From Trichosphaerium sp. ATCC 40318 (lineage: Eukaryota; Protista; Tubulinea), in contig JALMLS010000465.1 in the NCBI GenBank assembly GCA_038496445.1, positions 1-33,704 on the forward strand: 33,704 nucleotides of DNA, read 5' to 3'. The notes below the pieces were generated by a model that saw only the letters and a list, made by a program, of their open reading frames with translations, was not told the origin of the DNA and did no database searches. The translations under genes were made by a program, and so were the position numbers. Positions 2 through 30,780 of this stretch are shown piece by piece (within the stretch, counting starts at the first letter, position 1; the number at the start of each line of letters is the position of its first letter).

Positions 2-544
2 CTTGGACATTATGTTGATGGTAAACGTGATGGAGAGTGGAAAGAATGGGGTGACATGAGATGGTTTCGATGTCAAGGTAACTTGATGCTACATTGTCAT
101 TATGTCAATGGCAAAGAGCATGGAGAATATAAAGAACGGCATAAGGATGATAGTAAAATTCATGGTCAATATGTCAATGGTAAGCGAGACGGAGAGTTCA
201 AGAAGTGGTATCCAAATGGTCAATTACAAGAGGTGCATCATTTTGTTAATGATAAGTATGAAGGTGAGTCCAAGACATGGTATGAAACAGGAGAATTATT
301 GGAACAGAAGTTTTATGTAAACGGTGTACTAGATGGAATGTATCAGAGTTGGTACAAAAATGGTCAACTCAAGGAGAAGTGTCAGAATAAAAATGATGTA
401 TTGGAGGGAGAGTATAAAATGTGGCATGATAATGGTAATTTGTGTAAGCACTTTTATCTTGTAAATGGACGTAAAACAGGAGAATACAAAGAATGGCGTA
501 AGGATGGAGAATTGATGGAGCACTATAATTTAAGTTATTGGTAG
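2..544 (+). CDS. MORN-variant repeat protein (YwqK/giant-virus-like), 5'-partial, intronless in view
   Basis: The frame is open from base 2 (LGHYVDGKRDGEWKEW...) to TAG at 542-544. Tandem ~24-aa repeats of the form G-x-Y/F-K-x-W-Y-x-NGQL-x-E-x-x-x-Y-x-NG match MORN-variant repeats. Confidence 0.85.
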   Translation, partial: LGHYVDGKRDGEWKEWGDMRWFRCQGNLMLHCHYVNGKEHGEYKERHKDDSKIHGQYVNGKRDGEFKKWYPNGQLQEVHHFVNDKYEGESKTWYETGELLEQKFYVNGVLDGMYQSWYKNGQLKEKCQNKNDVLEGEYKMWHDNGNLCKHFYLVNGRKTGEYKEWRKDGELMEHYNLSYW

Positions 545-3794: not shown

Positions 3795-4959
3795 TTAACG
3801 ATGTAGCAGTGCTATTCGTTCCTCATTTAATGACGCCACTGCCTTTGCTGACCGTTTACTAAAAACACTGGTAAGTGAGTATTCTTTTCTTTCTTTCAAT
3901 TCACCTTGATACACACGGAGCTATGAAACCTGGGTAGAATGTTGGCAGAGTGATGCTTGATGATTGAACTGTTCTATATGGTGTTTGAGTGCCTACAATT
4001 CTTGTAAGCCAAATATAATAAACAATAAATGATTGAAGAGAACATAAGTGCCTGTTGTTTTATCAATTGCTATTGACATTCGTGGGGTTTCAGCAAAACT
4101 GTTGATACCAACATTTGTAGTATCATCAAGCCTTAACAGCAAGATAGTACCCACAATTGGAGAACCCAAAGTATCAATCGAATCAATAACACATGCTCCT
4201 GGAACAAAAAAAGCTGATGTATCAACAGAATGAATTTCAGAACTCCCAAATCTTTGAGCAACAGACAACATTGTTGTTTCGCTATCAACTACCACTGTAA
4301 CAGAAACAGTAAGTCATATTAAGCAAGAAAAAAAGAAGAAAAAATTGATGGTTATCAACGTACTTCCAATAAAACCAGAAGGTCTTACTGGTGATATTAC
4401 GCACGAGTATATTGGAGATACACAATTATTCGTATTTGTTATGTCAAGTTTGTATGTTGCCACTGTGGATGACGGAGGAAGTAAAACAATGAAAGTTGTA
4501 TCATCAATAAATTGACCGGCAATAGCAAACTCTGGGAAGTCGCCAGTACATATTAATGTGTTGTCAATTGATTTAACTATTACTTTAAATCTTCCACTAG
4601 TTTCTATCATTGTCAAAAGAATCATCGAGCCATCAAATGAAGGTACTAAAAAAGCATCATCAGCCTGTAAAACAGCATACTTGGTTTTACATCTGTGGCT
4701 CACTTATGGCTGGAAATTGTTCTGATTGAAGCGTAAACGTAGCAGTGACGCCCAGAGAAGTAGGTTCTGCAAATAGTTAAGTACGAAACAAGGGTAAAGG
4801 TATTTTACCATTATTAAACTCTAAGTCTGTATAAAATACTTCAACATTTTCAGGATCAGTTAGTGATGAAGCCACACCATAAATATACCCAGGAGAGATT
4901 TGGCGACAAGAAATAGATATAATTAAGGCCAATAACGCCAGTATGGATGTAAAATGCAT
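3795..4959 (-). CDS. Secreted protein of unknown function, copy A (6 exons; inverted paralog of 24591-25764)
   Basis: Signal peptide MHFTSILALLALIISISC. Exon structure is colinear with copy B, and it ends ...NEERIALLHR*. Intron 4 has a GC donor (4050-4051). Confidence 0.75.
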
Positions 4960-10032: not shown

Positions 10033-10394
10033 TAACGCCCTTCCGTTATGAATACAAGCAATATTCATATTGTCCCGTAAGCCATATTCATTAATATTCA
10101 TTCATGAATATTCATGGGCGTTTGGTGAGTCAGGATGTTGAGGAGCTTTGGTTTGTAGCACCTAGCAATGTTCCTAATGGATAGATTCAACAAGTTGCAT
10201 TTGAAAACCGAATCGGAATAGTCAACAGAACACCAAAACCCACAAATCCAGTCAAAATCAGCCATCAAATTGCACAATTTTCTGCCGTTTACTGTGTGCA
10301 TGAATAATGAATGAATTTTTTTTAGTCGTGAATATTTGTGAATGTAGGCTGTATTTGAATATTCAATTTATTCATTCATAACGGAAGGGCGCTA
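10033..10394. mobile_element. hAT-superfamily MITE (362 bp)
   Basis: TIRs TAACGCCCTTCCGTTATGAAT (10033-10053) and ATTCATAACGGAAGGGCGCTA (10374-10394) match at 20/21. Perfect 8-bp TSD GGATAGAT at 10025-10032 and 10395-10402. Multiple subterminal ATTCAT/ATGAAT motifs. Confidence 0.9.
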
Positions 10395-10844
10395 GGATAG
10401 ATCTTGTGATTCAAGATTACCTCTTCCTGCACTAGCACCACATTTTTTTTTAAAATAGTGTCAAAACAGTTCCAAATACATGAAAATAGCTAGTACAAGG
10501 TTTGTGGTTTTTCCAAATGAGCGTTATCCATATCTCCATGCGCTGAATAGTCGCCAGTCTTAGTAATTGGTCTGAAACTTGTCTAAACCTGCTCTCCACA
10601 CCCAGGCGACTATGTTAGCTGGTCCATAGCGCTCCTATTTTCGTACACAATCTTAAACAAATTTGAGCAGCATCCGCAGCGTTTTTTTCGTGTTCACAGA
10701 AACCATATTTTATTTTCGGACAATGTTACACGTCCACACACTTTCCATATTGGGTACCCATGTACAAAGGGCTCCAACGAGTATGTAAATATACAATTAC
10801 ACTTAAAACAATACATAAATATACCCATCTTCGGCATCATCTTA

Positions 10845-13838
10845 TTAGCATGTCAAAATTGCTTTTTTAGTAGCCATCAAAAGAGTGCCTTGTAAAAGCC
10901 GTGGAGCTTCTTTTGGATGCAGTAGGCGTCTTTGGTGTATTTTATTTAGTTGAAGCCAAGCATCAGTTGTAGATGCATCTGTAGAAGGTACCTCAGCAGT
11001 TGATGAAGCACTTGAAGGTACTATTGTAGTTGCCTCCGTAAATAAAGTTAGTTCTAGAAAGTAAAGTAGGAAGTACCATTTATTGAGCCTTTGTAGTTGG
11101 AGATTTAGTAGGAGCTTCAGTTGTAGGAGCATCTGTAATTGGTGCTACTGTGGTTGGCACTCTGTTGTTGGAGCTTTGGTTGTTGGTTCTAATACTGTTA
11201 AGTTGAAAAAGATGATAGTAATGTCCTATTAATCACTCAAGTACCATTGTAGTTGAGGCTTCCATTGTAAGAGCTACTATAGTTGGTGCTACTTGTAGGA
11301 GCTTCAGTTGTTGGAACCTCTGTGTTCAGTGCCTCCGTTGTTGGCGCAGCAGTTGTAGGAACCTCTGTGGTTGGAGCCTCTGTTGTTGGCGCATCAGTTG
11401 TAGGCGATTCTGTAGTTGGTGCATCTACAAAGAAAGTTAGTTGCTTTAGAAAGTAAAATACAAAGTACCACTTGTTGGCGCTACAGTTGTAGGTGCTTCA
11501 GTAGTTGGAGCTTCAGTTGTTGGCACTTAAGTTGTTGGTGCTACAGTTGTAGGAGCCTCTGTAGTTGGTGCTTCAGTAGTTGGAGCGTCAGTAGTAGGTG
11601 TTTCAGTTGTAGGAGCATCAGTAGTTGGTGCTTCAGTCGTTGGAGGTTCTGTAGTTGGAGCGTTAGTTGTAGGAGCCTCTGTAGTTGGAGCGTCAGTTGT
11701 TGGCGCATCAGTTGTAGGCGATTCTGTAGTTGGTGCATCTACAAAGAAAGTTAGTTGCTTTAGAAAGTAAAATACAAAGTACCACTTGTTGGTGCTACCG
11801 TTGTAGGTGCTTCTGTAGTTGGAGCCTCAGTCGTTGGTGCTTCTGTTGTTGGAGCTTCAGTTGTTGGGGCTTTTGTTGTTGGAGCATCTGTCATTGGTGC
11901 ATCAGTTGTTGGTGCATCTGTAGTAGGCGCTACAGTGGTTGGAGCCTCAGTTGTTGGAGCCTCAGTTGTTGGTGCATCTGTGGTTGGAGCTTTAGTCGTA
12001 GGAGCTACTGTAGTTGGTACCTCAGTCGTGGGAACCTCCGTAGTAGGCGCCAATGTAGGTGCTACAGTTGTAGGAGCTTCAGTGGTAGGGGCTTCAGTTG
12101 TAGGTGCTACAGTTGTAGGTGCTTCAGTTATTGGAGCGTCAGTTGTTGGAGCCTCAGTAATTGGCGCCGATGTTGTTGGAACCTCTGTAGTTGGTGCTTC
12201 TGTCGTTGGAGCCTCGGTTGTAGCCGCATCCGTGGTAGGAGCAGCAGTAGTTGGAGCTTCAGTCGTTGGGGCTTCGGTTGTTGGTGCATTCATTGTTGGT
12301 GCCTCAGTTGTACGCGCCTCTGTGGTAGGAGCTTCGGTTGTAGGAGCTCCTGTAGTTGGAGCTCCGTAGTAGGGGCTTCAGTAGTAGGCGCTACAGTTGT
12401 AGGAGCATCTGTAATTGGTGCTACTGTGGTTGGCACATCTGTTGTTGGAGCTTTGGTTGTTGGTTCTAATACTGTTAAGTTGAAAAAGATGATAGTAATG
12501 TCCAATTAATCACTAAAGTACCATTGTAGTTGAGGCTTCCGTTGTAAGAGCTATAGTCGGTGCTCACTTGTAGGAGCGTCAGTTGTTGGGGCCTTTGTTG
12601 TTGGAGCATCTGTTGTAGGCAGATTAGGTGGTTGGAGCATCTGTAGTTGGAGTTCAATAGTAGGCGCTACAGTCGTAGGGGCTTTGGTGGTTGGAGAAGC
12701 TGTAGTTGGTGCTTTGATTGTTGTTGCTTCAGTGGTTGGAGCGCTTGTAGTAGGTCATCAGTAAGTTGGCACAGCTATCATAGTTGGAAAAAGGTAAAAA
12801 TAATATCGATCAAGTATCAGTTGTTGGTGCATCTGTGGTTGGTGCTTCAGTGGTAGGAGCGTTTGTTGTTGGAGCATCTGTTATTGGAGCAGCCATTGTA
12901 GGAGCCTCAGTTGTTGGTTCATCTGTTGTAGCAACAGTTGTTGGAGCCTCTGTAGTCGGTGCTTCAGTTGTTGTCGGAGTAGCTGGTGTAGGTGCTTCTA
13001 CAAATAAAGTAAGTTCCCATAGAAAGTAAACAAAGTACCAGTTATTGGCACTACATTGTAGGTGCTTTTGTTGGTGCCTCAGTCGTAAGTGTATCTGTAG
13101 TAGGTGTTACTGTGGTTGGTGCAGCTTTTGTTGACCCCTTGGTTGTTGGAGTGCCAGCAGTTGGCGCTTTCGCTGCCTCTGTTGTCAGTGCATCAGTGGT
13201 TCTATAGTTTATTGTCTCAGTTGTTGGTGCGTCTGTAGTAGGTGCTACAGTGGTAGGAGCATCAGTTGTTGGTGTGGCTGTGGTAGGGCTGCAGTTGTAG
13301 GTGTAGTTGGTGCATCTATCACAGTTAGAAAGAAAGCTAAAAACAATATCAAGCAAGTACCAGTTAGGTTGGTGCATCTGTAGTTGGAGCGTGTTCTTGA
13401 CACATCTGTAGTTGGAGCGCCTGTTGTTGGTGCATCTGTAGTTGGAGCGCCGGTTGTTGGAGGAACGGTTGTGTTGGCTGATTGCAATGGAGTAGCGGTT
13501 GTTGGGGGAACGGTTGAGTTGCTTGGTTTTGATGGAGTAGCGGTAGTTGGAGGAACAGTTGTTGTGTTTTCTACAAAACGCTTAGTAGCTGTAGGAGACT
13601 CGGTTGTTGGTGGTTCACTTGATGGTGGGGCAGTGGTTGGAGCATCTGTTGTTGGCGCATCTGTAGTTGGAGCGCCTGTTGTTGGCGCAGCTGTAGTTGG
13701 AGCGCCTGTTGTTGGTGCATCTGTAGTTGGAGTGCCTGTTGTTGGCGCATCTGTAGTTGGAGCGCCTGTTGTTGGTGCATCTGTTGTTGGTGCAACAGTT
13801 GGCTGTGAAGCAGTGGTTGGTGAGCTTGTAAAAGGTTT
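10845..13838 (-). repeat. Mucin-like (TTEAP/TTDAP)n 15-bp tandem array arranged as duplicated exon-intron modules, partly degenerate
   Basis: 15-bp unit (e.g. GGAGCCTCAGTTGTT on +) encodes TTEAP on the minus strand. Related ~45-50 bp GTAC...AG introns recur near 11037, 11194, 11426, 11739, 12472, 12776, 12998 and 13316. Several frameshifts (e.g. ~12367, ~13290). Confidence 0.85.
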
Positions 13839-13866
13839 CTGTGACAGAAGTTAAGACAACGTATCA

Positions 13867-16800
13867 TCAGCAGTGATCCTTCTGTCTTGAAACTTTTTTT
13901 GTTGGCCTTTGTACTTGGTGCCTCAGTTTTAACAGTGTACGTTTTACAACAAGCCTTGGAAGTTTAGTTGGCCCTTTTATAGTTGTAGCTATAGGTGTTT
14001 CAGATATTGGAAAGTTGGTTGCCAATGAGCGATGTCTTTTTAACGGCTTACAAGATAACTTTTTGTTAAAACCTATTGTTGGTCAGCAAAACAAGATGTG
14101 AGGTTTAAAAAATAGATTACTTACCTACAGCATCTCCACTTTGACTGTTTCGTTTTCTTTTCTTACCTGTGACAGCGTGTAATATTTTCTTGCTATCTTC
14201 CCACTTTTTATGTGCTGTTGTCCTTTTTTGCCACATACATTGAGTGCATGTGGCATGTCGCTCACGAATGCAAAACGGCTTGTTTGAGCCCAACAAAATT
14301 GTAGCAACCATTTGCATGTATTGGCTATATGAAGTGATACTACTCTTGTTCAACATGGTGTACCAACAAAAAGAAGATGCCATAAAAAGATCACTAGAAA
14401 ATGTAAACAACAAATTATTACTACCATAATGTACAAATATGCTGCCAATAGTGCTGTCGTCCAGCGAGTGTCTTTAATGGTATGTATTCTTTTATATTTG
14501 AGCACACTACTTATAAATTAAAAACTGATGAGCTATCTTAGTACGTACAATCTATTAAATAAATCACAAGCATTTTTCAAATCTGAATACAAGTTAACTG
14601 GTTCAGGTTTTGATACTTCTTGTGACTTAGACTGAACTTCTTTTACTGTTGCTTTGACATTGGGATCTCCAATATTAGATACATACGGCACATACGCTTT
14701 TATATCTTTAAATAAACCCACACAAACTGGAGAGTGTTGGCTCAAAGTGTTTTCGTCATATACCCATGCATGTGCACCCACATTTTTGTTAGGTAGCAAC
14801 TTTCAAATAGTTAGTCGTTACACATATTGGAGTTTACCTTTTTTAAATGAGAAACCATATGTGGTGCTTTTTTGGAACTCATCAACCCAACAAACTTGAA
14901 GCGATGATCTGGATTCAGCTTTGCAATTGTGGGTGTTGTATAATATGAATCAGTTGCTATTACGATTTGGTTTTTTGGATATTTCTGTAGTATAGCTGAG
15001 GCAATATAATGAGCCATATATGATGGAGGCATGGTGCTTTCTCCAAATCTGACTTCTAAAATCCAAGGCCAAACATCTTTTTTGTTCTAGCTTTCATTAG
15101 TGGTTTAATAATGGTGAGATTTACCTTAAAACAAAACTCAAACACCCAAAACCCTTCCTTAACTGGTTTGCGTGAACAATAGCATGTGAACCACACCTCT
15201 ACAACAGTTACCATAAAAACAATGTGATTGCTACCGCACTTGCTCCTGGAAGCACAGTTTCATCTAAGCATCCCAGTTTTCCAGGTTTGAAATACTGTTG
15301 TATTGTTTTGTTTAAAGTCTCAAACCTGTGTTAATTGTAATACAAAATATACTACTTACTTTTGGACTGAAAGAGGTAGATAATCAATTTGTTTGGTAAG
15401 TTCTTGCCATTGCTCCATAGTACAACTTGTTTTAATGGCTTTAAATGGATAAGTTATAACGCCAACAACATGTACATACCAGTATTACCAAACAATGGAT
15501 TATTGCTCCAGTAGTTCTTAAGTTTTTGTTGTGGAGACAGTTTCATGACTAACAGCACACCAAAATAGTATCTTACTAAATCAATTGTCCATGTTCCTGC
15601 ACATGTCCATTTGTGATGTGAAGAGTTTTGTTTAGTGTGAGTGTATTCTGCAATGTCAACTTTAGCTAGCAAAGACTGTAATGATGCCGTTCCACACTTT
15701 TTTGCTGCTTTTTCAAGTCTAGCTTTAGTCTTTTTAAAAGTGCTTTCATACCAGGATGTCTGTTTAATACCTGGACAAGTTAAAAAAGTACTAATGCAAT
15801 AAAAGTCACCTGGATACAACTTGACTGCTTCACATTGGTTTTTATGAGTGTCAATTATAATGTCACGTTTTTTAAGCAAACTGTATAAACGCCTGTTGTT
15901 ATCGTCAAGAGTTTTATAGCCTTGAATATTGTTTAAAAAAAGCTTTCTACACAGCACAAGTACCTTTGTTTGAATAGTCCAAAACCATTGTGAATAGTGG
16001 AGTAAACCAGTGATGTATAGCTTCTTGTATTGTTGGTGGAGTCGTTTTATCCCATGATGTATATGTAGCACTGTTATTGACATTAAGAAGAGTATTTGTT
16101 GAAATGTGTTTCAAAGCTTCTAATCCAATTTGTCTTTGAGTAATGTTGTCTCTGCCAGGCTTCCAGTTCTAACATTTGTTAACAAAGTACATTGTGTATT
16201 GGTTGAGGTTACCCCGTCAGCTATGTACTTTTGCACTAGCCACTGTTGTTTAGCAACTTTGTATCCATCAAGTTTTTTAGCAGAACATTCCCACAAAACA
16301 CCTCCGAGAACCCTTTTTTGTGTTTACTGCTGCTTCAAGAAACCACTTGCGATTGCCATTTTTGTTTCTTTCTGCTTCTGTCGCTGTTTGTTTGTTCAAT
16401 ATTTGAACAATTTGAACACCTGCATTTGGCCCAAAAGCTTCTATATTCCGTGGCAATTCCATTTGATTTTGGGAAGTAAATGCCAACTCAACACTATTGT
16501 CAGACACATCTGATTGAATACTCCCGTCACTATCAGCGCCACTATCAGTGTCACTGAAGATATAGTCACTGTTTGATGTTAGTAAGCAATGGAACAACAT
16601 TTACATACCTGAAACTGTCACTTTCACTTATCAGGTCAATTTGTATTACTTGCCTCTCTGGGCGCAATTTGTACGGGTCTTTACATGATACGGTGTGTTG
16701 TGATCCTCTGTAGACAACCACCTGTACTTTCCACATATTATTGTGGGCGCTAGAGGCATTTCCTTTCAATGTGTTAGTTAAAAGCTTTGAATATAGCGTA

Positions 16801-17814
16801 CAAGGATTAGATTCCACAGGAAGTGATGTCATACAATCAATAAACCACCAAGTTCCATTGTTATTCACATATGTAGTGAAATGTGGATGCGGTTTAGGCT
16901 GCCACATCAAAATGTAAGCTGCCTCCCAAGTTCTGTTTATGTAAGTGCAAACGCTAACTGTCTTTACATACCTTCCATGGAGCTTTAAAGTCTTAGGTAA
17001 TTTGGCCATGTCCTGAACAACATTGGGGTTTGGATACACTGTAATCAAAGCCGGTAATGTCACACTCTTTATCAAATTAGGTTGCTTTCAAAATAATATA
17101 AAGTTACATACCTCAACAGCCTTAAACCCTCCCTCACTGCAAGTCCGACAGTTGTTTGAAACTGAAAGACGTTTATTCAGCCAGTTGCATATTTTTGCTT
17201 CAATATCTTGCTCTCCAAAAATGCACAACTGATGCGACACTCTGTAATCTGGATGTGTCAGAAGCACGGATGACAATAGTTTATTATGCTCACCTTCACA
17301 TTTGCAACCGCTGTTATAGTTAGAAAATGCATGAAATGAAACACAAACACTTCTAACATAGCTGTGAATTTCACGGACACTACAATCAGGGCTATATTTT
17401 CCACAGCGATGCTCCTCATAGTTATGTTCTATTTTCTTCCTCCTCTTTGGATATTTTGTGTAGCAATGCTGTAAAAACAACTGAATAAATGTGTTTCTAC
17501 TCCCATCTATGTTGTTAGATGTGAGTACTGTCGGGTTGTTGGGAATCACCTAAACTTTCTTAGTACTTGTGTATAGAACAACACATACGCAAATATCACT
17601 AACAGACTGTAAACCAGTGAAAACAGCATCCCAGGGACAGCTGTGATTATTCCAACATGCGTGGGGTTTCAAGTTTCCTACGACTACATTAGCATGTTTG
17701 GGTTTCTTCAAACAGAAAATCACGTGATTGAAATTGAAGAAAAAAAAAAGAGTTCTAGCCACGACAAGAGCTTGTCTTGCTGCGCACAGATATCAAATCT
17801 ACACTACGCACCAT
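13867..17814 (-). CDS. Intron-rich piggyBac-like DDD transposase with an N-terminal USP/peptidase-C19-like cysteine protease domain
   Basis: Spliced translation gives CWNNHSCPWDAVF (Cys 17637-17639), CKC and CRTC cysteines, LPKTLKLHG, HFTTYVNNNGTWWFID (His 16881, Asp 16836), VQVVVYR, then an acidic linker. The piggyBac motifs follow: YFGVLLVM...NYWS, PGKLGCLDET (D 15262), RKP.K.G, IATDSYYT (D 14949), KP..VNLYSDLKNACDLFN (D 14563), RW...D...S...Y. The start exon and one junction near 16240-16330 are uncertain. Confidence 0.75.
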
Positions 17815-18829
17815 TTGCGTATGCTTCTTCTATTTAACCTGTGTTGGGTGAAAAAACTATCGCAAATAAATACAACAGCGCTATTAACGCCTGGTAGGTG
17901 CTTTTAAAGCAGGTTGAGGCTGTACTTAATTATTGCTGTATTAAAACATACCGTAAGTATCGTAGCGTGCGCTCATTGCCAAAGATGTAATAATTACTCG
18001 TTCGCGTGGAGAATTATGTTATTTACTCTACAGTGCACAAAAAAAATATGAGTTTTCGGACTTTTACAGAAAACCCTACAACACAATGTGGCCATCTGTT
18101 TAACCTCAAACCGTTCTGTATAGCATCACATTGTGTAAAAATATTCATTGAGACAGTGTGGGGCTCAAAAAAGGACTTGTAGCCTATTCAGTGCACAGAG
18201 ATATTTGAGTAATTACGAAACAGTATCTAAAAAAAGAAGTTCTCGTTTCGTTGCACGCTTTTAGATACAAAACTTGTCCAATGTGGTTTCCACGTGTGTA
18301 AATAGCTATCACAGGCCTTTGGGAGCGTTTTGAAATGTGCATTATCCATATTTGAGTATTTAAAATAGAATTTTCAGTGAAGTAACCTTCTAGAAGCTTC
18401 TATTAATACCACAATTTATTTTTGTGTAGTTTTTATGGGTATAAAAAGAAACGAAAATATTCTCGATATCAGATGGAAGTAGTTCTCCACAGCTAGTTTC
18501 GGTTTGACTAACCGAAGCGACTCACATAAACCCCTCTTAAACCTTTCGTAGTGGCTGACGAAAGTAGACACATAATGGTCGGTCTTTAAAACCAATAAAA
18601 AATCCAAAAAAAAAAAAAAAAAGTAACAAATCTATTAGCGGCTTCCGTGATCTTAAAGTATCGGTGAACATAGAAGTTACTTGGTACCCAAAAAAAAAAA
18701 GAATTCTCAAAAACAACCAGCGGCCTTACCTAGGAAGTGCATCTGAATGAAAACAAATAAAAATACCGTGTCCTCACCTAGGGAGGATACTTTTGTTTTT
18801 GTTACATAGAAAACGTATCTCTAAGTACT

Positions 18830-19510
18830 CGGATATTATTAAAGCAGTAGCTACAAAGGGGTATTGGTGTTGTCTGGTCATGTAAGGTACTTCACATGAG
18901 CATAATGTGCAACTCTACCACAGCCATAGAAGCTCTTATACTAAACAACTTAAAACCACTATACCAAGTACAGACGGTAAGTAATCGAATACAAGGAAAT
19001 TGCTTTTTTTGGGTAATTGTTCTTAGGCTGTACAATGATGCATTGGCTTGCATCAAGGGCAAACACAATCACTTGGAAATTCTTCTTAAAAACAAATTCG
19101 AAACAAGTGTTACTATGAAGACGGTCAAACACCACTTCACTGCGCGTCGCCATGGACACTCGAAATCAATTGAATTGCTTTTTGATCAAATTAACAATGA
19201 CTTAGTTCTTGTTTGCCGGTACTTAACTTCCTTTTGTGCTCGACTGTTAACTCTTTAATGAGTTTTAAAGGGACTCTAAGGGAGATAAACCTCTACATAA
19301 GTTAGAAGAGCAAACTAGATGATGAGGCTATCAATAACGTACTCTAGAAACTTGACAACGAAGCGATTAAGTCAATTCTGGTTCCGAACGATAAAGGAAA
19401 AATACCATTCTTGGATAAGCCCGACAGTATAAAAGCTTTGGAGCTAGCCATACAACCAATACCTAACAATAAGCCTTGCCTAGAGATTCAACTTGCTCAG
19501 GTACCTTTAA
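18830..19510 (+). pseudogene. Ankyrin-repeat pseudogene
   Basis: ALACIKGKHNHLEILL followed, across two frameshifts, by EDGQTPLHCA/RHGHSKSIELL, a canonical ANK motif. In-frame stops upstream. Confidence 0.6.
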
Positions 19511-21134: not shown

Positions 21135-21940
21135 TCAAAACGATATCGCTAAATACGATTTGTCACGTATAAATTGACCTTTATCATAAAAATGTACAGT
21201 TCTTAATTCACCATCTTCACTCCAAAATATATCTTCGCCCTGTTTTTGTGGAAAGACTTGTTGTTGTGTACTTACATAAAAGCATTGACGCTTTATTTGA
21301 CCATTCTTATACCAACTTTTTTCTTCACCTTGCTGTTTGTTATCAACATAAAAACACTTGTAAGCCATTTGGCCATTATCATGCCAAGCTATTTTATCAC
21401 CTTCTAGCTTCTGAATTGCTGTACAATTACTAATCGGAGCCTTGCTATAACAAATACTACTTCTTTTGATGCCATTCATGTACCAACTTTTCTCTTCTCC
21501 AACTTTTATGTTGTTCGAGTACAAACACGTGGATTCCATCCTACCATTCCTATACCAACGCTTCTCTTGTCCGTGTCTCTTACTATTGATGTAAAAACAT
21601 TCCATTTTAACCAGACTTTTATGCTCAGCATTCCACAAGTTGCCTTCTCCTTCAATTAGGAAACATTGAATGCGCATTGGACAATTAAAATATTTCCTCC
21701 ATTTACCATGCTTATCAAACGTGCTATTGAATCTTGTAGTTATAGCCATGTGTTTGGATAAAAGAGGAGCCATTTTATGAATACTTCTCCGTCTAAATCG
21801 ATAATATCTAGGTGCAACTCAACGGGGAGGGTTAATAGGCAGTAATCAGCCAACTCTGAGGTATTAATCTACGAGGATGTCGCCGGTTAGTTTATGCTAC
21901 ATAGTACGTTTTAGCCAGCTACCTTTCGTTTTGACGCCAT
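21135..21940 (-). CDS. F-box-like + MORN-variant repeat protein (single short 5' intron)
   Basis: The ORF extends upstream of the listed Met as INTSELADYCLLTLPVELHLDIIDLDGEVFHKMAPLLSK (F-box-like). A 54-bp intron (21869-21922) joins exon 1 MASKRK. MORN repeats of the form GEEKSWYKNGQIKRQCFY follow. Confidence 0.75.
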
Positions 21941-24590: not shown

Positions 24591-25764
24591 ATGCATTTTA
24601 CATCCATATTGGGGTTATTGGTCTTAATTATATCTATTTCTTGTCGCCAAATACCTCCTGGATATGTTTATGGTGTGGCTTCATCACTAACTGATCCTGA
24701 AAATGTTGAAGTATTTTATACAGACTTAGAGTTTAATAATGGTAAATTACTATTACCTCGCCTTATACTTAACTATTTGTAGAACCTACTTCTCTGGGCG
24801 TCACTGCTACGTTTACGCTTCAAATAGAACAATTTCCAGTCATAAGTAAGCCAAAGTTTTTTATACCAAATGCTGTTTTTACAGGCTGATGACACTTTTT
24901 TAGTACCTTCATTTGATGGCTCGATGATTCTTTTGACAATGATAGATGCCAGTGGATTTAAAGTAATAGTTAAATCAATTGACAACACATTAATATGTAC
25001 TGGCGAATTCCCAGAGTTTGTTGCTGCCGGTCAATTTATTGATGATACAACTTTCATTGTTTGGTTTAGCTCGACATTCACAGTGGCAACATATAAACTT
25101 GACATAACAAATACGGATAACTGTGTATCTTCAATATACTCATGCGGAACACCAATAAGACCTCCTGGATTTGTTGGAAGTACGTTGGCGAACAACAATT
25201 TGTTCTTTTTTCTTCTTTTTTTCTCGCTTAATATGACTTACTTTTTCGGTTACAGTGGTAGTTGATAGCGAAACAACAATGGTGGCTGTTTTTCAAAGAT
25301 CTGGGGACACTGTGCTTTATACTATTGATACACCAGCTTTTTTTGTTCCAGGAGCATGTGTTATTGACATGGCATCTGTCAATACTTTAGGTACTGTTGG
25401 GGGTATTTTCTTGTTAGCAAGGCTTGATGATACCCGGAATATTGGTATCGACGTTAATACCGCCACCCCACGAGTGTCAATAGCAATTGATAAAACAACA
25501 GGTACTTATGTTCTCTTCAATCATTTATTGTTTATTATATTTGGCTTACAAGAATTGTAGGCACTCAAACACCATATAGAACAATTCAATCACCAAGCAT
25601 CACTATTCCAACATTCTACCCAGGTTTGATAGCTCCGTGTGTATCAAGGTGAATTGAAAGAAAGATTATCATCTTCGATACTCACTTAACTTGTGTTTAG
25701 TAAACGGTCAGCAAAGGCAGTGGCGTCATTAAATGAAGAACGAATAGCACTGCTACATCGTTAA
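24591..25764 (+). CDS. Secreted protein of unknown function, copy B (6 exons)
   Basis: Signal peptide MHFTSILGLLVLIISISC, five GT-AG introns keeping the frame, ends ...NEERIALLHR*. Inverted paralog of 3795-4959, with homology extending about 160 bp upstream and 50 bp downstream. Confidence 0.8.
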
Positions 25765-29152: not shown

Positions 29153-30780
29153 ATGAACGTAGACGTACAACCAGTAGTTATCGACAACGGAAGGTACATA
29201 TAAAAATCGCCAAAAGAACCAACTTCTACTTTCGTTTCATTAAGTATTCACTCTCTAAATAACTTTAATCTCACCTTGTATAGCGGTGTCTGTAAAGCAG
29301 GATTTGCAGGAGAGGACGCGCCTAGAGCAGTATTCGTAAGTATTTACTATGTGAAAATAACAGCAGACTTTTGTGTGAAACTACCTTGTTCAGCTGTGCT
29401 TACAACAAATCTTTAGTCATCTTTAATTGGAAGACCAAAATATGCTTCTGTCATGCCTGGTATGGGCACTAAGGAGCTATACGTTGGCGATGAAGCGCAA
29501 TCAAAGAAGGGTATTCTTTCACTCAATTATCCGATTGAGGTACCAATTTGCTTTTAGGGCGCCCGTTGGTATTCTTGCTAATACTTGCCAGCACGGTATC
29601 GTCACAAATTGGGATGACATGGAGGCGATATGGCACCACACTTTTTACAATGAGCTCCGAGTTGCACCAGAAGAGCATCCAGTAATGCTTACGGAAGCTC
29701 CATTGAATCCAAAAGCAAATAGGTATGTACCAGCTTTTTTCCTTTTTGATCTTTTACTAGGGAGCAAATGACCACCATTATGTTTGAGACCTTTAATACG
29801 CCTGCGATGTATCTATCTATACAAGCTGTTCTTTCACTTTATGCGAGCGGCAGGTACGTGCTCTTACAAACAAACTAAAGAGCTTACCTTTTTATCTCCA
29901 GAACAACAGGTGTCGTGCTCGACATGGGTGATGGCGTATCACATGTAGTTCCAGTCACAGACGGATACGCTATGAAACATGCTATTCAGAGGATTGACTT
30001 GGCAGGACGTGACTTGACAAACTACATGCAGAGGATACTATCAGAGAGAGGATATTCTTTCAAATCATCTGCAGAGCAAGAAATTGTTAGAAACATGAAA
30101 GAAAAATTATGCTATACAGCACAAGATTTCGAAAAGGAAATCATAAAGTCACAACGTATAAGATTTATTCTTCCTTAATATGATTACTTAGTCTTCTTCT
30201 AGAATCCTCACAACTTGAGAAAGACTACGAGCTACCAGATGGTCAAGTAATCACAATAGGAGCTGAAAGATTCAGGTACACAAACAGCTTATGAAAAAAT
30301 TGTTTCGACTCACGTGATTTGTATTAGAGTACCTGAGGTTCTATTTAAACCATCTTTTATCGGCATGGAAAGTGCTGGTATACATGAACACTTATATAAC
30401 TCGATCATGAGCTGTGATATAGATGTCAGAAAGGACTTGTACAAAAATGTTATACTATCCGGAGGAAGTTCAATGTTTCCTGTACGTCTCACTGCTTTTC
30501 GCTTCACTACTTTATACTAACACTATTATAGGGCCTCCGCAAGCGTTTGAAGACTGAGTTAGAGACTCTTGCCCCAAAGACAATGCAGATTAAGTGCTTA
30601 GCACCTCCAGAGAGGTACAACAATAATTCCTAAACATAGCTAATTTTCCGTTCTAGAAAGTACTCTGTATGGATAGGTGGATCAATCCTAGCCTCTTTGT
30701 CTACTTTTGGTAACATGTGGATAAGTAAAGAAGAATATGACGAATGCGGAGAGAGCATAGTCCATAGGAAATGTCATTAA
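29153..30780 (+). CDS. act: Divergent actin (9 introns)
   Basis: [109 protein letters not shown]...IVHRKCH*. All 9 introns are GT-AG. Confidence 0.95.

Follow-up and report, generated by a model that had tools for sequence, protein, structure and literature searches.

A multi-copy piggyBac-like transposon with a transposase joined to a candidate USP-type protease-like domain in Trichosphaerium sp. ATCC 40318

A window of 33,704 nucleotides (nt) from Trichosphaerium sp. ATCC 40318 (contig JALMLS010000465.1, positions 1 to 33,704), which is the whole stretch of DNA analysed here, contains a transposon and, within it, an intron-rich gene for a piggyBac-like transposase. With a slight lean in its favour, we read this as a multi-copy transposon of the piggyBac superfamily that would encode, in one protein, a USP-type-like domain, a core that resembles a SUMO-interaction motif (SIM) together with an acidic tract after it, and a DDD transposase. 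Coordinates throughout are positions in the window, and the gene lies on the minus strand. An initial annotation of this DNA had proposed such a gene, with a USP-like deubiquitinase domain at the N-terminus of a piggyBac-like transposase.

Results

Gene model

The window is AT-rich eukaryotic DNA (~36% GC). Between 17.8 and 13.9 kb, its minus strand holds numerous open stretches, and the frame changes between them. A model built by hand joined these stretches into 16 exons separated by 15 GT-AG introns (17720-13867), leaving 1075 codons open and ending at a TGA (13869-13867). This bore out the initial annotation, in which the scattered minus-strand open reading frames (ORFs) were joined through short GT-AG introns. 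The introns of the model were 34-52 nt long (mean 41.7). Their donors were mainly GTATGT, GTAAGT or GTAA, and a CTAAC-like branch site lay 8-12 nt ahead of the AG acceptor. The chance of a stop codon on the minus strand was 0.072 per codon, and a single open exon of 146 codons would arise by chance with a probability of ~2e-5.

An automatic splice search for the path with the least introns was also run. This path was partly wrong: it contained over-long or incorrect introns and missed the exon encoding KPVKEGFW, and the hand model was used instead. The latter was guided by the piggyBac blocks because these conserved blocks were needed to pick the correct introns. Specifically, with a 41-nt intron (15239-15199), KPVKEGFW is read in frame and is spaced canonically from the first Asp. 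As a control, we inspected the introns of the actin gene of the window, which were 38-52 nt long and had the same signals as those of the transposon gene. Tiny introns are thus normal in this genome.

The 5' end of the gene was less clear-cut. No in-frame ATG occurred in the first open stretch, nor was there another upstream of the Cys box apart from the candidate start listed in Table 1. Overall, the gene has 16 or 17 exons, and the encoded protein comprises ~1075 amino acids (aa).

The piggyBac-like transposase

The C-terminal part of the predicted protein is, with good support from its sequence, a piggyBac-like transposase. The initial annotation had recognized a piggyBac core that retains all three catalytic Asp residues (LDET, TDSYY and ACD), and this was upheld by the blocks themselves (Table 1), their spacing, the database neighbours of the second block and the piggyBac-type ends of the element. 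The blocks that flank them (YFG..L..YWS, KPxKxGFW, KPxxVxxY and RWxxxLL) follow the canonical order and spacing. In a feature search of the ESM-Atlas using the 83-aa exon that carries the second Asp (15086-14838), 95 of the 100 nearest clusters carried PF13843 (recognition 2829, score 0.93, 186 shared features).

Pfam was searched at E-values up to 1 and 10 using single exons of 27-152 aa or ORF pieces as queries. Among the single transposase exons, the best match was to DDE_Tnp_1_4, from the second-Asp exon (E of 0.007-0.012), and PF13843 was not matched at E up to 10. Queries of single-exon length are too short for Pfam. A word-index homologue search with the second-Asp exon was blank.

The transposase has an extra segment of ~70 aa preceding its first conserved core block. 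At its C-terminus, the Cys-rich domain appears to be cut down to C-x7-C-x2-C (14272-14237), with the second Cys pair present in none of the frames read.

Ends, extent and copies of the element

The ends of the element were sought by local alignment of 10300-11150 against the reverse complement of 17750-18950. The best match paired 10530-10550 with 18204-18184, with 18 of 21 positions identical, including ATAT. The alignment score of the two ends by itself was within the range of shuffled controls. A degenerate 16-nt terminal motif occurred three times in the window, at 10530 (plus strand), 18204 (minus) and 20719 (minus), versus 0.03 expected. When these three ends were aligned, the flanks were unlike each other and the likeness began exactly at ATAT. 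Finally, two RNA contigs from other copies matched the window up to 18205 and then diverged from it. We consider the end match to be significant based on the motif excess, the start of the likeness at ATAT and the divergence of the RNA contigs at 18204/18205. The element is therefore 10530-18204, or 7.67 kb, with imperfect inverted repeats beginning CTC and ATAT on both sides. These ends are newly defined in this analysis.

The inverted repeats of piggyBac-like elements begin C[C/A/T][C/A/T] (Bouallegue et al. 2017, PMC5381638), a pattern to which the CTC of both repeats conforms. TTAA flanks are the rule for piggyBac, with ATAT and a few other tetranucleotides each reported in a unique sequence (PMC5381638). 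A search of the window revealed no TTAA-flanked inverted repeat and, hence, no TTAA target-site duplication of the kind used to define piggyBac. No host reading frame was restored across the inferred empty site. The copy at this locus is apparently intact.

The third terminal motif, ATAT CTCCATGAGTTG (20719-20704, minus strand), is oriented as the right end at 18204 and stands unpaired in the window. The subterminal CACATGTAAAAA of this motif recurs in the letters of the RNA contigs that run past 18205. Together, the motif and the run-on letters suggest a related element and nested insertions elsewhere.

RNA evidence

The RNA evidence came from one run (share 0.07), whose contigs cover only 16347-17173 and 18104-18205. 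One contig directly joined the exons on either side of a 45-nt intron (Table 1). At the 40-nt intron between the last protease-like exon and the acidic exon, one contig ended at 16609 with 19 extra unplaced letters that did not fit the intron, and another ended at 16570. These contig ends fit the removal of the intron. The intron that the initial annotation gave as its example (17588-17550) lies outside the RNA cover and matches the common donor and branch pattern.

The contigs were 95-99% like the window and carried private indels, including deletions of 10 nt and, net, ~74 nt. Based on this likeness and these indels, we assign them to further family members that are partly broken. The deletions were located at 16816 and 16904-16984, the one of ~74 nt being frame-breaking, and short matches at 18104-18205 lay upstream of the gene. 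Because the contigs carry deletions and match upstream of the gene, broken sister copies appear to be transcribed at a low level. The element is thus multi-copy, and other transcribed copies exist. The base differences between contigs and window, two silent and four replacing, were too few to judge selection.

One fused gene

The fusion of the two parts in one gene, as initially annotated, was borne out by the gene model and, in part, by the RNA. In the model, as at the RNA contig ends, splicing connects the acidic exon, which corresponds to the piggyBac N-terminus, with the last protease-like exon. Moreover, the transposase part has no separate in-frame start codon: no ATG was found upstream of the conserved piggyBac N-terminal blocks (16276-15964). 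We favour one gene because of this lack of an ATG and because the acidic Ser/Asp tract adjoins the protease-like exon. The fusion is well supported.

The junction near 16.3 kb was modelled with two introns and a micro-exon (Table 1). The initial annotation had proposed either the 52-nt intron or a 1-nt homopolymer correction for 16240-16330. By itself, the 52-nt intron (16294-16243) runs into a stop, and only together with the micro-exon and the 44-nt intron does it become usable, restoring the frame exactly. The homopolymer correction is unnecessary.

The N-terminal protease-like domain

Upstream of the acidic tract, four exons encode a domain of ~330 aa, the 39-nt intron ahead of the last of them (16971-16933) being optional. 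The USP-like motifs that the initial annotation had described, namely a Cys box, CKC, CRTC, LPxxL, a His-Asp box and VVVYR, were all found in that order (Table 1). The candidate His lies in PKPHPHF, ~210 aa from the candidate Cys, and the Asp follows 16 residues later. We take the spacing of CKC and CRTC to resemble that of the zinc ribbon in USP fingers, and the series CKC, CRTC, LPALITVY, LPKTLKL, YILMW, HFTTYV...WWFID and VVVYR to run as fingers and palm do in a compact USP. Such a distance between Cys and His presumably suits a small USP and not a UCH-L or Josephin domain. Compared by eye with PROSITE-type USP Cys and His signatures, NNHSCPWDAVFTGLQ and AAYILMWQPKPHPHFTTYV were similar but did not satisfy them; the resemblance is one of motif order and spacing. 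The domain also holds a basic KRRKK stretch and leads into a Ser/Asp-rich linker (16610-16493). The hydrophobic core VIQIDL with the Ser/Asp run looks like a SUMO-interaction motif, so the substrate is possibly SUMO rather than ubiquitin.

Using the exon that carries the His box, 76 of the 100 ESM-Atlas neighbours (33 + 43) carried PF00443, UCH, with scores of 0.89-0.92. The only protease family returned by Pfam was Peptidase_C12 (PF01088), at E of 0.04-0.08 and 13-14 bits versus a cut-off of 27, and this weak match spans only the catalytic His/Asp region of that family. We give weight to a USP assignment because an independent method, the Atlas, returned the family that had been predicted beforehand from the motifs.

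Other candidate families were considered and rejected. UCH/peptidase C12 was rejected on its profile, which scored below the cut-off, and on the Cys-to-His distance of ~210 aa versus ~70 aa for that family. VTD was rejected for want of an Asp-x-His motif, and Josephin and UCH-L were rejected as the Cys-to-His spacing is far too long and none of the profiles matched above its cut-off.

Several results weigh against the reading of the gene that we favour. At E up to 10, none of the four exons matched UCH (PF00443), UCH_1 (PF13423) or other USP-clan families in Pfam. The Atlas recognition of the His exon was 1917, below the reliability mark of 2300, and its shared features numbered 130-142 versus the 170 typical of true family members. 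The zinc-ribbon exon returned nothing from the Atlas, and the first pair of that putative ribbon is CxC, not CxxC. A phmmer search with the His exon among 1.84 billion representative proteins yielded repeat artefacts only: its two matches, a collagen-like and an immunoglobulin repeat protein, were artefacts of summed repeats. Word-index homologue searches with a 218-aa ORF and with the His exon (E of 10), PDB sequence searches with three exons, and viral and metagenome locus scans were all blank. AlphaFold models of the two largest exons, calculated without an alignment, had pLDDT values of 33.5 and 42.6 and were unusable. With respect to the gene as a whole, the start codon is unconfirmed and hangs on the 106-nt intron; the 16.3-kb junction is likewise unconfirmed, lies outside the RNA cover and has alternative in-frame solutions. 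The transposase part (16346-13850) and the Cys-box exon are also without RNA cover. Finally, the Cys-rich domain looks reduced, such that the copy or the family may not be fully functional.

The initial assignment to USP/C19 thus stands as to its ordered motifs, to which the UCH neighbours in the Atlas are added; a UCH profile match, a homologue, a signature and a usable fold model did not follow. We consider the chances of a USP fold in this domain to be evenly balanced. That it is a papain-like isopeptidase of some kind is moderately probable.

Table 1. Positions of the main features in the window
Feature	Position	Strand	Basis or remark
Left end of element: ATAT, then inverted repeat starting CTCCATGCGCTGAATAG	10530-10550	plus	local match, motif count, end alignment
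Right end of element (5' side of gene): inverted repeat CTCTGTGCACTGAATAG, ATAT before	18204-18184	minus	local match, motif count, end alignment, RNA contigs
Candidate start ATG	17814-17812	minus	read from sequence; needs unconfirmed 106-nt first intron 17811-17706 (phase 0)
Protease-like N-terminal domain, ~330 aa, four exons	17720-16609	minus	exons 17720-17589, 17549-17112, 17066-16972, 16932-16609
Cys-box-like NNHSCPWD, candidate catalytic Cys (codon 17639-17637)	17651-17628	minus	judged by eye against USP Cys box
Zinc-ribbon-like GCKCEGEH (CKC)	17309-17286	minus	~52 aa from CRTC
Zinc-ribbon-like NCRTCS (CRTC)	17153-17136	minus	sequence reading
Spliced 45-nt intron	17111-17067	minus	RNA contig joint 17066/17112, CT..AC on plus strand (GT..AG on gene strand), contig depth 6.5
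LPALITVY and LPKTLKLH	17057-16977	minus	sequence reading
His/Asp-box-like HPHFTTYVNNNGTWWFID	16889-16836	minus	under weak Peptidase_C12 match, profile positions 162-197
Terminal strand-like VQVVVYRG	16727-16704	minus	strand predicted there in low-confidence AlphaFold model
SUMO-interaction-like core VIQIDLISESDS, then Ser/Asp-rich acidic tract across 40-nt intron	16649-16493	minus	motif reading
40-nt intron, TACTAAC branch site	16608-16569	minus	links last protease-like exon to acidic exon; RNA contig ends at both edges
Candidate junction	16294-16169	minus	52-nt intron 16294-16243, 30-nt micro-exon 16242-16213, 44-nt intron 16212-16169
piggyBac-like transposase part, ten exons	16168-13867	minus	gene model, catalytic blocks
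First Asp block GCLDETV	15273-15253	minus	sequence reading
Second Asp block IATDSYYTT	14960-14934	minus	sequence reading
Third Asp block NACDLFNR	14574-14551	minus	sequence reading
Mucin-like Pro/Thr-rich multi-exon region, 15-nt period	13838-~10950	minus	within element, downstream of transposase stop
Divergent actin-like gene, ~nine introns of 38-60 nt	29170-30777	plus	intron-type control

Mucin-like region and neighbouring genes

Downstream of the transposase stop, the element contains a mucin-like region whose introns are well formed and 44-56 nt long. For its acceptor at 13840-13839, a weak GTTTCA donor at 13893 could serve as an in-frame partner, and the resulting 55-nt intron (13893-13839) would lead from the transposase to the mucin-like exons. 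Within this region, a 116-nt direct repeat occurs at 11161-11276 and 12438-12553. The two copies, 1277 nt apart and 97% alike, are probably the result of a recent internal duplication.

Outside the element, two ORFs to which no function was assigned, 4314-4703 (minus) and 24870-25265 (plus), are 80% identical over 104 aa and lie inverted ~20 kb apart. Two MORN-repeat ORFs, 56-544 (plus) and 21135-21773 (minus), are likewise opposed. These opposed pairs hint at a large inverted duplication around the transposon. At a distance of 0.8 kb, the neighbour of the element on its left side is an intronless ORF of 306 aa with F-box and leucine-rich repeats (9728-8808, minus).

Discussion

The proposed explanation begins with the N-terminal ~330 aa, whose Cys, His and Asp are arranged and spaced as in a compact papain-like isopeptidase of the USP type, and which contain a zinc-ribbon-like insert. 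Our proposal is that this domain is catalytically active as an isopeptidase for ubiquitin or SUMO. In cis, it would free the transposase of these modifiers, or else chromatin and repair factors at the donor and target sites, and this de-conjugation would shield the transposition complex from degradation or silencing by the host. Such a role would equal that proposed for the Ulp1, OTU and VTD proteases of other transposon superfamilies. The fullest version of this explanation, a still-active, ATAT-inserting piggyBac lineage with a working, divergent USP-fold ubiquitin/SUMO isopeptidase, its own SIM and mucin-like cargo exons, is tentative, and we hold it to be somewhat doubtful.

The explanation depends on the N-terminal domain being a protease. 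It may instead be a lineage-specific zinc-binding module whose USP-like motifs are a chance resemblance; such a module might, for example, recognize the unusual ends of the element in place of the reduced Cys-rich domain. Indeed, no profile, sequence or structure tool confirmed a USP or any other protease, and the domain carries CxC and CxxC pairs along with basic KRRKK. Furthermore, end binding in canonical piggyBac is the task of the Cys-rich domain, of which only C-x7-C-x2-C is seen here, and the ends themselves are not canonical. Against this, the motifs for Cys, His and Asp follow one another correctly and at USP-like distances, the Atlas neighbours were 76% UCH, and the only protease family from Pfam sits on the His/Asp box. 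Chance seldom returns exactly the family that was predicted from motifs, and we regard a non-protease module as rather unlikely.

Three other explanations concern the gene or the element as a whole. The element may hold two genes, a protease-like gene stopping at a TAA (16279-16277) and a transposase gene starting downstream. The two-intron solution at the junction restores the frame exactly, the transposase lacks an in-frame ATG ahead of its conserved N-terminal blocks, and the RNA contig ends place the protease-like exon beside the exon with the Ser/Asp tract, which typifies a piggyBac N-terminus. We therefore judge two genes to be very improbable, even with RNA cover that ends at 16347, right before the doubtful junction, and a 52-nt intron whose GTGGGA donor is weaker than the GTATGT/GTAAGT donors of the other introns. 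This copy may also be a defunct relic that yields no working protein, regardless of what its family formerly encoded, as would accord with the reduced Cys-rich domain, the lack of a clean start codon unless the 106-nt intron is accepted, and RNA contigs that stem from copies with frame-breaking deletions and never match the transposase part. We consider a relic to be unlikely, as 1075 codons are open over 16 exons and all introns retain GT-AG and a branch-like site, a combination that decayed DNA would have a negligible chance of showing; the inverted repeats are intact as well, as is the ATAT on each side. Lastly, the initial annotation had allowed for a domesticated fusion gene, that is, a host gene derived from piggyBac and no longer a mobile element. 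In its richness in introns, the gene resembles host genes and the domesticated PGBD5 and TPB2 (PMC5381638), and its Cys-rich domain looks reduced. Nevertheless, the terminal inverted repeats with matching 4-bp flanks, together with near-identical transcribed copies that bear private indels, make domestication extremely improbable.

If the fullest version of the proposed explanation is true, the element would be the first piggyBac to carry a protease and would represent a separate instance in which transposons gained de-conjugating enzymes. Ulp1, OTU and VTD were independently acquired by unrelated transposon superfamilies, and the benefit to the element is still untested; a protease-like domain fused to a piggyBac transposase would add another independent acquisition. 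Among eukaryotic cut-and-paste systems, piggyBac is understood best and engineered most widely, and it would thus be tractable for testing whether de-conjugation in cis helps transposition. Should the ATAT flanks prove to be genuine target duplications in all copies, they would also be informative on the recognition of the 4-bp target by piggyBac transposases. A domain other than a protease would leave the element as an intron-rich piggyBac variant with an N-terminal module of another kind.

Comparison with known systems

One sentence of an earlier paper mentions a protein of Trichomonas vaginalis that combines a transposase domain (pfam01609) with a Peptidase C19 domain, and the ubiquitin pathway was proposed there to be widely involved in transposition (Bao, Kapitonov and Jurka 2010, PMC2836005). 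The initial annotation knew of no USP fused to piggyBac. In keeping with this, full-text searches of the literature library used turned up no account of a USP, or of any other protease, in piggyBac; nevertheless, the C19-pfam01609 protein is a partial precedent (PMC2836005). Compared by the description in that paper, this protein, XP_001314237.1, is like the present gene in that a DDE transposase of the IS4/piggyBac clan is joined to a USP-type (C19) domain. Its C19 domain is recognized by a curated profile, whereas the present N-terminal domain is not, and the present gene is set apart by its ~16 introns and by an element with ATAT flanks.

Ulp1 proteases are found in CACTA and Zisupton elements. 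They also occur in Mutator and Ginger2, and OTU proteases occur in Helitrons and Ginger1 (PMC2836005). The VTD deubiquitinases of Helentrons/Helitrons are active and have an invariant Asp-x-His motif (Erven et al. 2022, PMC9741609). The likeness to these elements lies in a papain-like isopeptidase carried on a DNA transposon, often in frame with the transposition enzyme, for which the proposed role is protecting transposition proteins or modulating repair. Compared with Ulp1, OTU and VTD, the present domain is marked by its Cys...His...Asp order, its zinc-ribbon-like insert and the absence of the Asp-x-His of VTD, and the transposon superfamily differs.

USPL1 is a USP-fold SUMO isopeptidase with a divergent catalytic domain that is barely recognized by standard USP profiles. 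The present domain is comparable by analogy only, no sequence match having been obtained: it too appears to be a divergent USP-like domain, with a link to SUMO through the SIM-like VIQIDLISESDS.

With canonical piggyBac from Trichoplusia ni and piggyBac-like elements (PMC5381638), the present element shares the DDD blocks, an acidic Ser/Asp N-terminal tract, inverted repeats starting with C and a 4-bp, AT-only palindromic flank. Unlike canonical piggyBac, it has ATAT and not TTAA as this flank, ~16 introns versus an intronless gene, an extra N-terminal domain of ~330 aa, an insert of ~70 aa before the first core block, an apparently reduced Cys-rich domain and mucin-like exons within the element. 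Finally, PGBD1 and CSB-PGBD3 (PMC5381638, PMC2268245) each have, as does the present gene, a foreign N-terminal domain spliced to a piggyBac transposase. These two are single-copy, domesticated genes without functional ends, whereas the present element is multi-copy and has its ends and all three catalytic Asp residues.

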